Assembly (NCBI GenBank): GCA_001643675.2
Contig: LSRY02000018.1
Span: 310,001 to 374,000, forward strand
Length of the DNA: 64,000 bases
DNA from: Monocercomonoides exilis PA203
Lineage: Eukaryota; Protista; Preaxostyla
Direction of reading: 5' to 3'
In this document: positions 777 through 8,474 of the stretch, piece by piece
Layout of the letters: every line of letters starts with the position of its first letter
Position numbering within the stretch: position 1 is the first letter of the stretch
The notes under the pieces: model-generated
Seen by the model: only the letters and a program-made list of their open reading frames with translations
What the model was told of the DNA's origin: nothing
The model's database searches: none
Made by a program: the position numbers and the translations under genes

Positions 777-2652
777 ACCGCACGATTTGAAAAAATGCTG
801 CTTGAAATAAAATTTCTCTCTGAATGACGCTCAATATAAAAAAAAATGATGTTTTTTGGGATGGAAAAATGATTTTAAAAAATACATAAAAATTATTAGT
901 TTTGCATTGATTATAAAAATTCCGTCAAAAGTTCACGCCTGTCCTTTCTGTCGCAAATGCAGAGGATTGCCCAATCACTGATGCTGCCATTCTCCTTTTC
1001 CATTGTTTCCCTGTGCTCCTTTCTCCATCATCCTTTATTCCCCACAAATATCCCGCTTTCGATATTGTCATCCACTTTTTTTCCACAGGAAAAAATAATT
1101 CGGTATTTTAACTTTTCAAGTGATGTCCATTTGCTGGCATTCTTCTTTTCATTCTCAACCAAATACTTTGAAATCGAATTTGTTTTCTTCCCCTCTCCCA
1201 ACTGAATGCGAAAAACATGCAATCCTCATTCGAATGATTGTTTCTAGCCATCCAGCTCTCTTCTGATATTCTCCTCAGAAAAACAAAGAAATTACCATTT
1301 ATATAATTTATCAGATTCTTGCACTCTGAAAAGATGGTTTATAAAAGCATCTTCTAAGCAAACAGGAACGATAAAAAATGCATACATGCAAATATTTCGA
1401 TTTTTAAAAAAATGTTGAATTTCCTTCAATGATGTTTTTCATAAAAATCTTCTCCCCCAATTCCATCGACGATGTCCCTCCTTCGCTGTCTCGTGCAGCC
1501 TCTCAAAATAATATCGTCCATTCCACAGAAAATATTCGCTCACCGTTCTCTCATTTTAACAATGAATATTTGTTTTTTCAAATCTGATGATCTGTATATC
1601 CATTACTGCAAACACGAAAAAAGATTTATCGTTTTTTCTTTCTTTCTTTGTTTGTAACGCCTTGGCAAATATCACTAACAACACAGAATGGTATAACAAC
1701 TTATATTTTCGTGGTTGTTTTGAGTTTTTATTTTGCACCAATTTCTTCAATCAAATGATATCTGAACTCAAATCAAATGGCGAAATTTCATTGCTTTCTG
1801 AATGCAACGCTTTTCAAAAATGCAGATAACGAGCGGAACTGAAAGGTTTAATGGTTTGTGCTCGTTGTTGAATTTAAAAGGTTTCTTGTAATATGTTTTT
1901 CTTTGTTTTTTTGAAGAATTGTTTTCTAAACTGGAAGATCACGCTGAAGATGAGAAGAAGCAGAAGATTGAAGAAATGAATGAAATAGTTGAAGAAATGG
2001 ATTATTATGAATTCATGTCAGTTTTCACAACAAAACTATTCGACAAAATATCCAAAATGATTGAAGAAAAAAAAATGTCAATGGAAAATGCTTTATATTT
2101 GCTGAAGCGCATTGGGCATTTCATCGCATTGAAAAATATACGGATTTAAAGCTTTGAATATTCTTTGCTGAAAGCAAGATTTGAGAAGATAATATTTTAC
2201 AAATATGAAAAAGGAGATGGAGAGGATGAAAATCTGCTGGTTGATCTTTGTGAATGCTTTTTGATATTATGCTTTAACTGTATTTCAGATGAATCACTTT
2301 CAATCTGTGTGCCCTGTCTTTTGAAAGTTTCTTTGAAGAAAGAAGAAAGCGAGGAAATTCAAAAAGAAGTGGAAATTGCTTTGCTATCATTGAGCAATAT
2401 TAAATTTTGTGTATTAACATTTATATTTCCTTTTTGATGTTTTTATTGAAAAAGAAAATATGAAATTCACTTTCTTCTCTTCACCCACCGCGTCTTCACT
2501 CCCACCCTGTAAATTAAGTTTTAAATAAGTTCCAAATACAATACCAGACCAAAACCCATTTTGAAACACATTTCACCTTTTTCTCTTCAAGCGCAATTTG
2601 TATTCTTATCCGCTTTTTCCTCGCTTCACTTTTTTAAACCAGATTCGCTTGG

Positions 2653-2786
2653 GTGACTGACCCTTAAGTGATACTCTCAGATCGAAGAGAAGAAAGTGAA
2701 TTTCATATTTTCTTTTTCAATCAAAACGCAAGCATTTTGATTAACAAGAAAACATTCATTCACTTTCTTCTCTTCGATCTGAGAGT
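2653..2786. repeat. DIRS internal complementary region (ICR) plus direct repeat of the 5' terminal segment
   Basis: 2684-2721 is the exact reverse complement of 2445-2482 (38 bp). 2718-2786 is the reverse complement of 7189-7257 (69 bp, 1 mismatch). 2653-2701 directly repeats 7169-7217 (1 mismatch). Confidence 0.93.
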
Positions 2787-2802
2787 TTGTAGAAATTGGG
2801 AG

Positions 2803-4885
2803 TTATGGATTGCTTTCTGAATTTTCTCTTTCCATCATTTCTTTTCGTCTCTGTGATCTTGTTCGAATAATAAACTGGATGCATTTTTCTTCGATGATTT
2901 CATTTTCGTCTTTCTCGTTTTCAATGTTCGTGGTATTTGATTGCTTTTCGTGGATAGATTGAAACTCATTATCATCTGGTTCTTCAATGCGGTCTTGTTG
3001 TGAGATCTTTTCTCTTGCTTTCTCTGTTTCATGGCCTTCTGGCAAACGTGATTGTTGATTGATGGGAACAATGGAATCCTTTTCGTCTGATGTGGATGTG
3101 GATGGAGGAATTGTGGAAGGCTGTTGAATTGCTTTCTTTGTCTCCTGATTCGATGAAATTATCTGTGCCATCTTGTTTGATATGTTGGATTTGAAATAAT
3201 GCTTTATCACAGTGTTGCTTCTGGGGGATAATCTTGCAAATTTTGCCACCTGTTAGACTGGAGTTCCCGCCATTGTTAAGGCTGATATTGAAGCATGTTT
3301 CAATGTGTATGGGCTGCAGTTCGAAGGGATTCTTGCATCTTTCATCATTTCGCTGGCTGCTTTTCGAATTGCTCGGGCCTTCATTGGATCATATGTTGAA
3401 GAGCTCAGAAGTAGTTTATTGGAAGCAGGATTGTGAATTTTCACTCGATCCCATAGATCTTTAACGGCTATTGCTGGACATATGGGTAATTCTTTTTGAA
3501 AAGTCGCAAATGTTAAATTTATAAATTAATCAAAATTTTCATATTTTGCTCAAATATCTGCTTTCACTCACGAATCTCCTCAAGAATGTTTGAAATGGCA
3601 TTATCCAGAAATAGATTTTATATTGGAGAAGTTTGGTGTATGTTTACATAAATATAAGTAAAATATGAAAATTTTGAATAATTTGAAAATTAAACATTTG
3701 CGACTTTTCAAAAAGAATAACCCATATCAAACTTTCCTTGCTGAGGAAAGGGATGACAATGTTGCTTCTTTCAAGTCCAGTTTTTAGTGATGCATTCAGG
3801 TTAATTGATTGCTTATTTATTTCTGATTCCTTGAGATTAATTCTTTCCAGTTCTGTAAAGCGGAACGCAGAGAACATCATACACAAACAAATTGTTTTCT
3901 TCGTTAGCTGTGAGAATGATAAATTTTCGTTCTTTCCAATCGTTTCTATATACATGAATAGTTGTTGAGGGTTCCACATATCATCTTGTCTCTTTTTCTT
4001 TCTGCATTCCGATCTCCTGAATGATCTAAACAGGATTGAAATCAAGGTGTTCTCCCCAAGTGATTTTCCGTATAATACTGATGTTAGGAAGGAAATGGCA
4101 GATCTGACAATTCTCAAAGAAGAAGCTTTCATTCCGTTGTTTTTCAAGGCGACAAACACATCCAAGCATCTTTTTTGCCAAATCTGAAATTTAGAAGGGA
4201 TGTCTTTGAATTTCAACTGATCCCATCCGTCTTTGAAATGTGTGAAACCATAAGTGCATTTCATCCATGTTACACTAGCGACGCTGTTTTTGCACTCTTC
4301 GGCAAGTTCACGTGACATGCTTCTTGATGCTAAAATCTCGTTCCACCACGATTCTCCCTTTTCGGTTATGGATTGATTGCGCATATCCTCAGTCTCCCTG
4401 GAGGAAGCGTTGCATTCATTAGCTTCATCCATCTTCCTTCCCTGATTATCTCCTCCTTTCTCCTCCATGTCCAAGAGATGTGATTTGTGTTGTTCAGCAG
4501 AGGTTCCCATATCTGACCTTTCCAATATGGAAGAAGAAGAAGAACTCGAGCTTTCTCCATCGCTGCTTTTCGGATCACTGCTGGAATCAAAGGAACCGGT
4601 GGATGCGCAAGAACTGTCTCGTTTTTCCAAGAAATTTGTAACCCGTCTTGACTTAAATTGCTTCCTGGTCCGCACCATCTCGTTGCTTTTGTGTTTTCTT
4701 TTGTTGCGAACGCATCGAGTGTGATGTGCATCTGAAGCTGATTGGTGATCTCTTCGAGTGCTTCTTGTTCGACTTCGTAATCTCCTCCTTTTGCCAATCT
4801 CGATAGGCCATCTGCTCTGACGTTTCTCTTTCCGGGAATATGATGAGCTTTCACAACAACTTTCAGCGCTTGAGTTTGATTCCAT
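2803..4885 (-). pseudogene. DIRS tyrosine recombinase, disrupted by a MITE (3484-3723) and a TAA at 3253-3255
   Basis: CMMFSAFRFTEL carries the catalytic Arg box. Removing the MITE restores ESLICPAIAV, followed by YTLKHASIS and TVIKHY in one frame. The ORF overlaps the RNase H/MT region in another frame, as is usual for DIRS. Confidence 0.88.
3484..3723. mobile_element. 240-bp MITE with about 37-bp TIRs
   Basis: Left end GGGTAATTCTTTTTGAAAAGTCGCAAATGTTAAATTT; right end reverse complement GGGTTATTCTTTTTGAAAAGTCGCAAATGTTTAATTT. Flanked by ATAT at 3480-3483 and 3724-3727 (equivalently a TA duplication with TGGG..CCCA ends). Confidence 0.92.
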
Positions 4886-6534
4886 ATTTTTTTCAGAATG
4901 GTTCTGAGATTCTGACCATCTCCCTATTGATTCAGATTTTTAACTGCTGTTGTGTTGTCTGATCGAATAAGTTGATTTCTTTTTTCTTGATTTCGAATGG
5001 AATTTGAGAAATGCGCGATGGCTTGATTTATTGCGAATAGCTCTCTGCAATTTGAACTTTGGTTTCTGATTGAAGGGGGAAGAGGTTTGTGAAAGTCCAG
5101 CATTTGATTGTTAACTTTTAGTGTTGTGCCAATGGAGAACCCTAACGAATTTGCTGTTAGAATAGCTTATTGTTGAAGCACTGGAATCAATATTATTGGT
5201 TGGTTCTCTTTCAGCCTTTCGCTCCACTTCATGAGGCAATTTGTTATCGATGCATTCACGCGCAGTTTTCCTTTCCATCCATTCAGACTCAAAGCTTTGT
5301 TTTGGAGTTTGTACATTTGTGACAAATTCAGGGAGGCCTCTTGATGCAGGAATCTGGTTGCATTCAGTTTCCCTATCAATGAGGCAAACTTCTTTATCGA
5401 AACAACTCTGTTGTTCTGGGCAATCCTTCTCCATTTCTTGCACTCTTTCATCAGCTCGGTTTTCTTCGATTCCTCTATCTGTACCACAAACTGATCGGTA
5501 TCCCATTGGAAGCCCAAAAATTTGAACTGCTGACTTGGAATTAAATGACATTTTTCCGAATTGACCAACAGTCCCAATTTGTTAAACATCGAAATGGTTT
5601 TCTCCACTAAAATATTGAGTTCCTGCGGGTCTTGATGAAGAAGAACAATATCGTCCAGGTATGCAATGGCTCTCACCTTCCATTCCTCCCTCATGTATTT
5701 TAGGACTTTCCTCATCACTTTTGTGAACGTTCGAGGCGCATCTTTGAATCCGAAAGGCATTCCGTGGAAAGCGTAATATTTTCCTTTGAAAACGAATGAA
5801 AGGAATGGCGATAATTCTTCGCTGTCTTTTATAAGATAATAAGCTTGGCTCAAGTCCAACGTGACTGCGTAATCCTTATCTTGAATGATTTTCTCCAATG
5901 TTCTGATGTCTTCTTGCTTGTAATAAATCGTCTTGATTGCATTGTTGAGTCTTCGGCAATCCACGATTTGCCTCCAGCCACCGTCTTTCTTTCTGATTAC
6001 AAACACTGGATTCAAATGCTTCACATCCTTCTCCTGAATCGGCTTGATGATATTTGTTTCCAGTTGCTTCTTGATCATCTCTAAAAAGGCTTGTTGGGCT
6101 TCTTGACTCTGATGCTCCAAAGGGTTGAATGCTCCTGTTTTCTTGAGTGATTCCTTCGCGGCTTTGCTCCTCCATACAGGGATTACTCCTTTCCCAATAA
6201 TTCGTGCTCCTCCAATTTTTTCCCATTCTTCTCGAAATAAACAAGTTCTTCCTCCAACCATTGCCTCTTGTCGGACTTCTGCGGGCTGTAGAATGCTGTT
6301 CGTATCTTCTATTGGAATTTTCGCTCCCCTGATTGTCTTCTTGAAGCGAAACCTGAAGCTTTTGGTCGCAGCCGGATTTGGTTTTGTTGTCTTGACAACC
6401 GGGGAGCTGCTTGAAAAAATCTGTGGCTTACTGATCTTCAGGTTGGAATTGTTCTGGCTCTTATCGAACTTCTTCTCACAGGCCAGCGAGTTGTTTACAG
6501 CTTGTATTGTTGACTCTTTTCTGTTTTTCTCCAT
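4366..6534 (-). pseudogene. DIRS pol: reverse transcriptase, RNase H and DNA adenine methyltransferase-like domain in one frame with two nonsense codons
   Basis: ORFs 5167..6534 and 4366..4854 share a frame, with stops TAA 5167-5169 and TAG 4924-4926. The bridging segment has SSNCRELFAI and IRSDNTTAV, then HIPGKRNVRADGLSR (RNase H) and LDAFATKENTK...W...LAHPP (MT-like). Confidence 0.92.
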
Positions 6535-7150
6535 TCTTCTAGAAAGTTTGATTGTATTTATATTTAAAGACTGGTAGCTGAGCTCTCCTTCATCTGTGCA
6601 GCTGACCTAAAGCCGAATCTTCCTTGAATTCTTACAGATCTTGCTTCCTTCAGAGCTTTTGAAACTTATATAATTGTATCTGCAATCGATCCTTTTTCGT
6701 CATCTTTTTCTTTTTATTTCGCGTGTGTGTAAAGCAGGATTTTAATGGCTGGATATAGAAATGCTTCTGTTCGCTCGCCTGCCTTATCCTATGCATCATT
6801 CATCCAATTATCTGTTCTAGAAGCTGTAGGAGGAGCCTTTGGCAGAAATGGATTTAAATCATCTTCCTTCAGGTCAATAATAAGATCTTCTAAATATCTA
6901 TCTGGTAAATCCATATCATATAAGCTGCAATCCGGATCTCTGAGAAATATTGTTTTAAAACTATTTTCCAGCAGCAAACTATCCTCGCCATGGCTTTCTT
7001 TAGCTTCTGAAGCTCCCGGGATCTGTTGGGAAAATCAGAACTGGAATGAGAAATAGAACTTGAAAACATCTCTCCCGGAGGTCCATCTGACATCATTGAT
7101 GTGGCAGAATTCAACGCGGGTCCAGTGCTGAGTGGAGAGCTTGGGAGCAT
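6535..7150 (-). pseudogene. Decayed gag-like ORF1 of the DIRS element
   Basis: ATG at 7150 lies just inside the 5' terminal repeat and upstream of pol; the region is fragmented by a frame change and several TAA/TAG. Called from position only. Confidence 0.5.
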
Positions 7151-8474
7151 ACTTTTTTCAGATTCGCCGTGACTGACCCTTAAGTGATACTCTCAGATCA
7201 AAGAGAAGAAAGTGAATGAATGTTTTCTTGTTAATCAAAATGCTTGCGTTTTGATTGCTTTTCTTATTTTTCATATTTTTCTTTTTTCTAATTAGTTAAT
7301 CGAACGAGAACTATATTTGAAAGAAATTACAAAAATCATCGAACATCAACAGAAACACAGAAATCTTACGCATCTGGCCTATCAATCTGCTTGGAGTTTT
7401 TTGATAGACAGATTATTTTACGATGAGAATGTAGAAGAGGTGATTGTGAATGAGCTGCATTTTGGAAGAGAAGCAGTAAGAGAACTGGAAGAGCTAACAA
7501 GAAATATGGATTGGAAGAAGAAAGAAGAGAAAATGAACAAAGAAGAAGCGAAAGAAGTGCTGATAATTAGGAGATGGCTCGAAACATTGTAGATTTATTT
7601 TCTCACTTGTCGATTGTGGAATGAAGAAAATGAAGGGCTAATCAATAGCATTGTTCAGGTATATCGAGCAGCAAAAGGGAATAATGGAGTAATTAGCAAT
7701 CAATGCATTTTCTCCTTGAGATATGCAGCAGAAAATAGAGATGCGAAAGTTGTAGATTTGTTGAAAGGAGGAGCAGTTTATGCTATTTTGGAAGAAATGC
7801 AGCAACGAACATTGAAAAATAAAATGGCAAGAGAAAACTTGCATTTCTTTTTGAGTGTTTCAGAAAGATTGAACGAAAAGACGGATAATAAAATGGAAGA
7901 AGAGGAAAGAAAGTCAACGAAAAAGAAAGTCTTTGAAAAGATGGAAGAAGAAGGATACGAAGGTATCATCACCAGCTTTCATGAAACTTTAAAGATTTTT
8001 AACATACGATATAATTGTGGACCATCGTTGAAAATTTCTGATTATTTTGTGAATGTTTGAGGAAATGAAATTCCTCGAATTTTATGACACAAAATATTTA
8101 TTTTTATTTTTATCATTTCGTGAAATTGAAAATAATCATTTGAGTGTATTTAAATTTTTATTTTTGTCTCGCTTCATTTCGATGAAATGAAGAGAAAAAG
8201 AGAGAGAGAGAGAGAGAGACATAAAATGACTTTCATTTTCCTCTTTTTCAAATGATTTGTCTGTTCATCAATTTTTATGAGACAAAAATCAGTGAGTCCT
8301 TTCTCATTCATCAACTTGAAAAGTCTCTTCTCTGCTCCTTTCAGTGGTTTTGTGTTTCTTTTGCTTCTTCCCTTGTTTTTCCTTGTTTCATATGATTACA
8401 GTTCTCTGAAGAAAAGAAATCAAAACCTTATGAAGAAAAAAGAAGATTTCTTTTGGTAAATGGTCGTTCTTTTG

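Follow-up and report, generated by a model that had tools for sequence, protein, structure and literature searches.

A probable dead and rearranged copy of a DIRS1-like retrotransposon family in an intron of Monocercomonoides exilis

When a single retrotransposon carries both direct and inverted repeats at its ends, does the layout define a new kind of element or only the history of that one copy? The question is raised by an element in a 64,000-nucleotide stretch of the Monocercomonoides exilis PA203 genome (contig LSRY02000018.1, positions 310,001 to 374,000; hereafter the window, with positions counted from its first letter). The initial annotation of this stretch recognised a DIRS-type element whose internal complementary region (ICR) is the complement of the joined termini, and which integrates at a short shared sequence; both points have stood, and we find no target duplication. 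It went on to propose that the element recombines with its target at a 4-bp ATTG and that its mixture of repeats marks a distinct DIRS lineage, and here our results lead elsewhere. From analysis of the M. exilis assembly (82.3 Mb in 101 contigs, based on Oxford Nanopore (ONT) reads), we put at about 0.9 the probability that window positions 2448–7256 hold a copy, now dead and rearranged, of a DIRS1-like family of tyrosine-recombinase retrotransposons ~4.57 kb in length, and that this copy lies antisense in a host intron.

The genes identify the element. Reverse transcriptase (RT), RNase H, a putative Dam-like methyltransferase and a recombinase are all encoded on the minus strand, so that the left end of the window copy (2448–2464) is the true 3' end. 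Pfam finds RVT_1 with almost the same strength in the window open reading frame (ORF) at 5167–6534 (E 3.5e-30) and in the pol gene of a sister copy, L004 (E 3.2e-30), and the RT motif YxDD is present as YLDD. At the end of the uninterrupted recombinase ORF of a sister copy, the tyrosine recombinase domain PF00589 (Phage_integrase) scores 29.3 bits, above its cut-off of 27.1. Read with the standard genetic code, several sister copies have three open ORFs, of 294, 686 and 1137 amino acids: a gag-like ORF upstream of pol (294 amino acids, stop to stop), pol itself, and a recombinase ORF of 1137 amino acids from stop to stop, or 1104 from the first start codon, which overlaps pol in another frame. 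This arrangement is the DIRS1 architecture, down to the long pol/recombinase overlap that is on record for DIRS1-like elements, those of fungi among them (PMC3266345).

The window copy itself is dead. A 240-bp foldback miniature inverted-repeat transposable element (MITE) at 3484–3723, flanked by a 4-bp ATAT target duplication and absent from the sister copies, splits the recombinase gene; pol is interrupted by premature stops (TAA at 5167–5169 and TAG at 4924–4926); the recombinase frame holds several more, and gag is broken. The in-frame stops of the window pol being TAA and TAG only, a ciliate-type genetic code was considered, and is ruled out by the sister ORFs that are open under the standard code.

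Our pol query is 100% identical, over the 74% of its length that is covered, to a ‘putative reverse transcriptase’ of M. exilis, whilst the nearest proteins from outside this species are encoded on Logan contigs (40% identical) and by another oxymonad, Streblomastix strix (32%); no named fungal relative is found among the pol protein matches. One of these contigs, from another sample (SRR13490895_1188, 3.7 kb), has gag, pol and recombinase genes ordered as in the M. exilis family; its pol is 40% identical, and the contig ends before any terminus is reached. It is probably a related oxymonad DIRS element.

The repeats of the window copy are those that had been described, and they are far beyond chance, since they are part of a multicopy element. 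A repeat finder matches the ICR to the long terminus over 69 nt (2718–2786 and 7189–7257, 99% complementary) and to the short terminus over 38 nt within the element (2445–2482 and 2684–2721); the latter match runs on to 44 nt (2439–2482 and 2684–2727) because the adjoining host DNA has the same T-richness as the element's other end. CAAT at 2718–2721 is common to both halves of the ICR, and ATTG is found at 2445–2448 and again at 7254–7257. Around the ICR lies a 29-nt inverted repeat (2673–2701 and 2758–2786), a 49-nt direct repeat joins 2653–2701 to 7169–7217 (98% identical), and the terminal inverted repeat is reduced to 17 nt (2465–2481 and 7201–7217). Three of these features are unique to the window copy: the occurrence of ATTG at both ends, the direct repeat of 49 nt together with the bracket of 29 nt, and a terminal inverted repeat of 17 nt.

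The rest of the family shows what the unrearranged element looks like. At least 25 loci in the genome are 86–94% identical to the window copy. Sister copy L004 has perfect 49-nt inverted terminal repeats (ITRs), with a 17-nt extension outside one of them (the true 3' end, on the left in the window copy) and a 39-nt extension outside the other (the true 5' end, on the right in the window copy), together with a 103-nt ICR complementary to both termini. Read in sense, the canonical element, 4,569 bp long with ATT counted at both ends, runs from the 39-nt left extension through a 49-nt ITR, gag, pol/recombinase, the ICR, a spacer of ~150 nt and the second 49-nt ITR to the 17-nt right extension. 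A genome-wide search for the ITR pattern gave 34 matches and identified 10 copies with perfect or near-perfect 49-nt ITRs on opposite strands; in the seven canonical copies measured, the two ITRs differ by 0–2 mismatches. We found no split direct repeats of the PAT-like or Ngaro-like kind, the canonical termini being inverted.

In the window copy, by contrast with these 10 inverted pairs, both ITRs are on the same strand, and it is the only copy in which this is so. BLAST matches the first 282 nt of the window element to sister loci in reverse orientation. When window positions 2483–2683 are reverse-complemented they align to positions 505–705 of L004 with 181 matches in 201, against only 45 matches over 271 columns when the two are aligned on the same strand. 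On these alignments, the window copy carries an inversion of 201 nt, bounded by the 38–43-nt inverted repeat that the 3' terminus forms with its complement in the ICR. This one inversion accounts for three features at once, the direct repeat of 49 nt, the bracket of 29 nt and a terminal inverted repeat that seems to have shrunk to 17 nt: only 17–18 nt of the ITR are still inverted because the remainder was flipped. The repeat layout, judged against the sister copies, is thus specific to this copy and is not a character of a lineage. Equally, its direct repeat is an artefact of the inversion and not a repeat of the PAT/Ngaro type. PAT-like and Ngaro-like elements share with the M. exilis family a core of RT, RNase H and tyrosine recombinase (PAT elements have a methyltransferase as well), but they carry split direct repeats (A1...B1 A2 B2) in place of inverted termini and an ICR.

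What flipped the segment? Homologous recombination or template switching between the 38–43-nt repeats may have done so, and we think it unlikely that the element's own recombinase made the inversion by acting on the ICR and the integrated 3' junction. In duplex form the ICR repeats the circle junction in inverted orientation, two inverted attachment-site-like (att-like) sequences would be expected to invert the DNA between them, and the breakpoints do fall within the repeat that holds the junction core. Any exchange inside that repeat, however, yields the same product, so the data cannot discriminate, and a single flipped copy among 11 speaks against site-specific flipping as a frequent event. 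The wider proposal, in which the duplex ICR would act as an internal att-like site for recombinase flipping and the element would in addition be the first structurally complete two-extension DIRS1-like element in Metamonada, we regard as more doubtful still; were it true, the DIRS1-like superfamily would be extended beyond the unikonts, and integration would need only TT and a T-run, not an identical trinucleotide.

It is improbable, to a greater degree, that the flipped segment is an artefact of assembly or polishing at a short inverted repeat and that the true locus is canonical. The flip is unique among 11 two-ended copies, the assembly is ONT-based and one palindromic contig end involving this element family does look artefactual. 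Against this, a 201-nt inversion lies well within single long reads, the divergence of the segment is about equal to that of the rest of the copy (90% versus 94.6%), and the copy bears other signs of age in its MITE and its stop codons.

The point at which the element joins its target can be read from the flanks of the family, tabulated for 17 distinct ends of the short-extension type and 13 of the long-extension type, with both ends available for 8 distinct copies. The long-extension end always reads ...GTTTTGATT, and the base that follows in the 13 copies is variable (G in two, C in five, A in five and T in one); it is therefore host DNA, as is the G at 7257. The short-extension end always begins with AAAAAG. 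A G stands before it in 16 of 17 copies, which makes the G at 2448 the first base of the element itself. In front of that G stands TTT (12 copies), ATT (4) or CTT (1), which leaves TT in 17/17. The six bases preceding the TT contain a mean of 4.6 T, compared with 2.5 at background sites ending in TT (p < 1e-5 by resampling).

Two empty sites resolve the boundaries to single bases. L065 is a paralogous empty site for the L004 insertion (flank identities 98% and 94%) and reads ...TTTTTGATT followed directly by CTCCATGC; L071 is a paralogous empty site for the insertion of another copy, L007 (80% identity), and reads ...TTTTTATTT followed directly by the right flank. Both carry the junction trinucleotide once, and the base after TT is C or A, not G. 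It follows that the insertion extends from G-AAAAAG to GTTTTGATT, a unit of 4,566 bp, and makes no target duplication. The 3'-end junction retains the NTT of the target and the 5'-end junction the ATT of the element; only TT is strictly common to element and target, the full ATT being found in 4/17. Paralogs of the window copy's own site are ~75% identical, at which level the position of the site is resolved, and the single bases are taken instead from the L004 and L007 insertions. Candidate empty-site paralogs for L005, L006 and L008 are 82–88% identical.

These results dispose of the proposed crossover at ATTG and of the distinct lineage that was to go with it, a combination that we consider very improbable. 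In the window copy, ATTG does stand at each end, and the ICR holds CAAT once. Among the 8 distinct two-ended copies this is the only such case, however: the tabulated flanks show ATTG at both ends in 0/7 others, the empty sites have C or A after TT, and the ITRs of the 10 other pairs are 49-nt inverted repeats. Nor is the terminal layout novel, since the canonical layout and its ATT/AAT junction were already tabulated for DIRS1-like families such as MciDIRS1, RoDIRS1 and LgDIRS2 (PMC3266345). The ‘ATTG crossover’ amounts to the ATT junction that was known before, followed by a host G that stands there by chance, and the element belongs to an ordinary DIRS1-like family whose only novelty is its host group. 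The value of this result is corrective: one rearranged copy can mimic a new terminal architecture, and it is sister copies and empty sites that settle the matter.

The host site is an intron of 76 nt, GT...AG and T-rich, when read without the element. Joined across the insertion, the window flanks align unbroken to at least 22 element-free paralogs belonging to a very large multicopy host gene family, and in the paralogs too the intron is T-rich at the site. That the A/T-run at the 3' end is a poly(A) remnant, as in target-primed insertion or insertion assisted by a long interspersed nuclear element (LINE), can be given next to no credence, for although most copies, read in sense, show an A-rich tract of ~8 nt after the 3' end, the T-run is already present in both empty paralogous sites, the T-rich paralogous introns make the run at the window site host sequence, target duplications are not seen and 5' ends are always complete. 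A first look with the host flanks (2045–2444 and 7258–7657) returned ~1,000 candidate family members in the genome at 70–87% identity. Pfam gave no match for the host exons flanking the element.

Several points weigh against our account of the locus as a dead, rearranged DIRS1-like copy. The RNase H domain downstream of the RT, sought in an uninterrupted sister pol, matches RT_RNaseH_2 at E 1.6e-6 and 28.5 bits, just under the Pfam cut-off of 29.8; PF17919 is precomputed on P0001, an M. exilis protein identical to the pol query over the stretch covered. The putative Dam-like methyltransferase of the same pol is a weak match to PF05869 (E 0.0027, 17.9 bits, under the cut-off of 28.1), a domain carried by many distant relatives at ~30% identity to pol. 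Box II of the recombinase is YTLKH, with lysine at the usual Arg II position in an alignment to the integrase 3nkh; an xxLK variant of the box, SDLK, is listed for AmDIRS2 (PMC3266345). The activity of the recombinase is inferred only from the spread of the family. The empty sites are paralogs, not alleles, and TT as true crossover homology cannot be separated from TT as a mere part of a recognised T-run. Finally, the inversion and the layout of the copy are read from the assembled sequence alone.

How do these ends compare with those of known elements? DIRS1-like elements have two ICRs, and the part common to both is a 3-bp ‘circular junction’ (Piednoel et al. 2011, PMC3266345). In the same survey, 23 of 28 annotated elements begin and end with NTT, mostly ATT, complementary to the junction, and an integration model is given in which the junction trinucleotide recombines with an identical genomic one without target duplication. 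Elements with both left and right extensions were known at that time from fungi and Amoebozoa only, and the metamonad group was rated ‘uncertain’ for DIRS1-like elements (PMC3266345). The paper describing the M. exilis ONT assembly gives only bulk repeat classes (PMC8767320), and our literature search found no paper naming both Monocercomonoides and DIRS. In M. exilis, a metamonad has a DIRS1-like family that is complete in structure, down to ITRs, both extensions, ICR and overlapping ORFs.

The Mucoromycotina elements MciDIRS1, RoDIRS1 and PblDIRS1 (PMC3266345) resemble the M. exilis family in size (4.3–4.4 kb versus 4.57 kb), in having left and right extensions and a 3-bp ATT/AAT junction, in the lengths of the ICR halves (59–75 and 39–44 nt versus 68 and 35–38 nt), and in the long overlap of the pol and recombinase ORFs; they have a methyltransferase domain, which in the M. 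exilis family is putative. MciDIRS1, for example, measures 4,402 bp; its left extension is 38 nt long, its ICR halves span 75 and 42 nt, and its ORFs overlap. The M. exilis family differs in its metamonad host, in its shorter ITR (49 nt versus 94–107 nt conserved) and in beginning and ending, in sense, with AAT where the Mucoromycotina elements have ATT; in this last respect it has the AAT/AAT/ATT polarity of LgDIRS2 (PMC3266345). With DIRS-1 of Dictyostelium discoideum (the Cappello model; PMC7192593) it shares ITRs whose outer extensions are not identical, an ICR that is complementary to both termini and lies near the 3' end, three overlapping ORFs and the lack of a target duplication. DIRS-1, however, has ITRs of ~300 bp, a right extension only and a TTA junction, and prefers to insert into other DIRS-1 copies, whereas insertions of the M. 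exilis family follow T-runs, in introns as well as in intergenic DNA.

Experiments with DIRS-1 established that its ICR is essential (Malicki et al. 2020, PMC7192593). In the M. exilis family, termini differ from the ICR of their own copy by 0–2 mismatches in 103 nt, compared with a mean of 1.36 against the ICRs of other copies, and the long extension contains a trinucleotide that varies (GTT, GCA, GTG or GTA), with terminus and ICR varying together in most copies. This natural variation is consistent with the ends being rebuilt on the ICR as template, and the insertions indicate that a target needs only TT after a T-run, not the full junction trinucleotide. Following the published DIRS model, the ends of the complementary DNA would be rebuilt on the ICR to give the junction ...GTTTTGATT-GAAAAAG... 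in a circular or otherwise joined intermediate, and the recombinase would then exchange this junction with a target ending in a T-run plus TT. The outcome would be the 4,566-bp unit without target duplication, with the target's NTT at one junction and the element's ATT at the other. In the window copy, the flipping of the 201-nt segment, the arrival of the 240-bp MITE and the accumulation of nonsense mutations would all have followed insertion. The features of the copy are collected in Table 1.

Table 1. Features of the DIRS1-like element and its host intron, in window positions
Position	Strand	Feature	Remark
2411–2444	+	Upstream part of host intron, GT at 2411–2412	Joined flanks align to paralogs without the element
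2445–2447	+	ATT kept from target, last 3 nt of host T-run TTTTTATT	NTT in 17/17 copies; single in empty sites
2448–2464	-	Short terminal extension, 17 nt, begins G-AAAAAG, true 3' end	Complementary to ICR 2702–2718
2465–2482	-	First 18 nt of 3'-side ITR, original position	
2483–2683	.	Segment of 201 nt, inverted with respect to all other copies, with remaining 31 nt of ITR flipped at 2653–2683	
2684–2786	-	Internal complementary region (ICR)	
2684–2701		ICR part: complement of ITR start	
2702–2718		ICR part: complement of short extension	
2719–2721		ICR part: AAT junction	
2722–2757		ICR part: complement of long extension	
2758–2786		ICR part: 29 nt of ITR	
2803–3479	-	Recombinase C-terminal catalytic part, box II and catalytic-Tyr region, in-frame TAA	
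3480–3727	.	Nested MITE with target duplication	Absent from all sister copies
4366–6534	-	pol (RT, RNase H, putative Dam-like methyltransferase)	Long N-terminal recombinase part overlaps in other frame, also broken
6311–7192	-	gag-like ORF1 remnant	Longest open piece 86 amino acids at 6890–7150
7169–7217	-	5'-side ITR, 49 nt	
7218–7256	-	Long terminal extension, 39 nt, ends ...GTTTTGATT, true 5' end	ATT 7254–7256 element-derived (ATT in 13/13 copies)
7257–7295	+	Downstream part of host intron, AG at 7294–7295	

Some sister copies have rearrangements of their own. In L009, L011, L018, L027, L029 and L025/L026, 293 bp are missing, which took in the ICR and spacer and the greater part of the 3' ITR, whilst the outer termini are complete. 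The deletion is bounded exactly by two 29-nt direct repeats, and the copies that have it occupy at least two lineages on the copy tree. We considered a subfamily that transposes without an ICR, and set it aside: recurrent deletion between the 29-nt direct repeats after insertion is simpler and likelier, since at least two lineages are affected.

Two pairs of copies stand out. L002 (C7:1405871-1410444) and L004 (C7:1448056-1452629) are inverted with respect to each other, 38 kb apart and 99.1% identical; at their 5' ends they have 623 nt of flank in common that is only 93% identical, and the flanks at their other ends are unrelated. Such a pair could have arisen by separate insertions that hit the same base in each of two paralogous host sequences, or by a duplication with later gene conversion. 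L003 and L010 (C77:1-11100), at the start of a contig, are head-to-head copies with at least 1.5 kb of common flank, which is 99.7% identical. The 3.4-kb spacer between them is a near-perfect palindrome, which may be a fold-back artefact at a contig end of the long-read assembly.

The MITE nested in the window copy has arms of ~100 nt that are 81% complementary, with terminal repeats beginning GGGTRATTC. Nine solo copies (L055–L063) are likewise 240 bp long and are flanked by target duplications of 4 bp, in most cases ATAT but also ACAT, AAAT and AGTT; duplications of this length would fit Sola-, Ginger- or piggyBac-type families.

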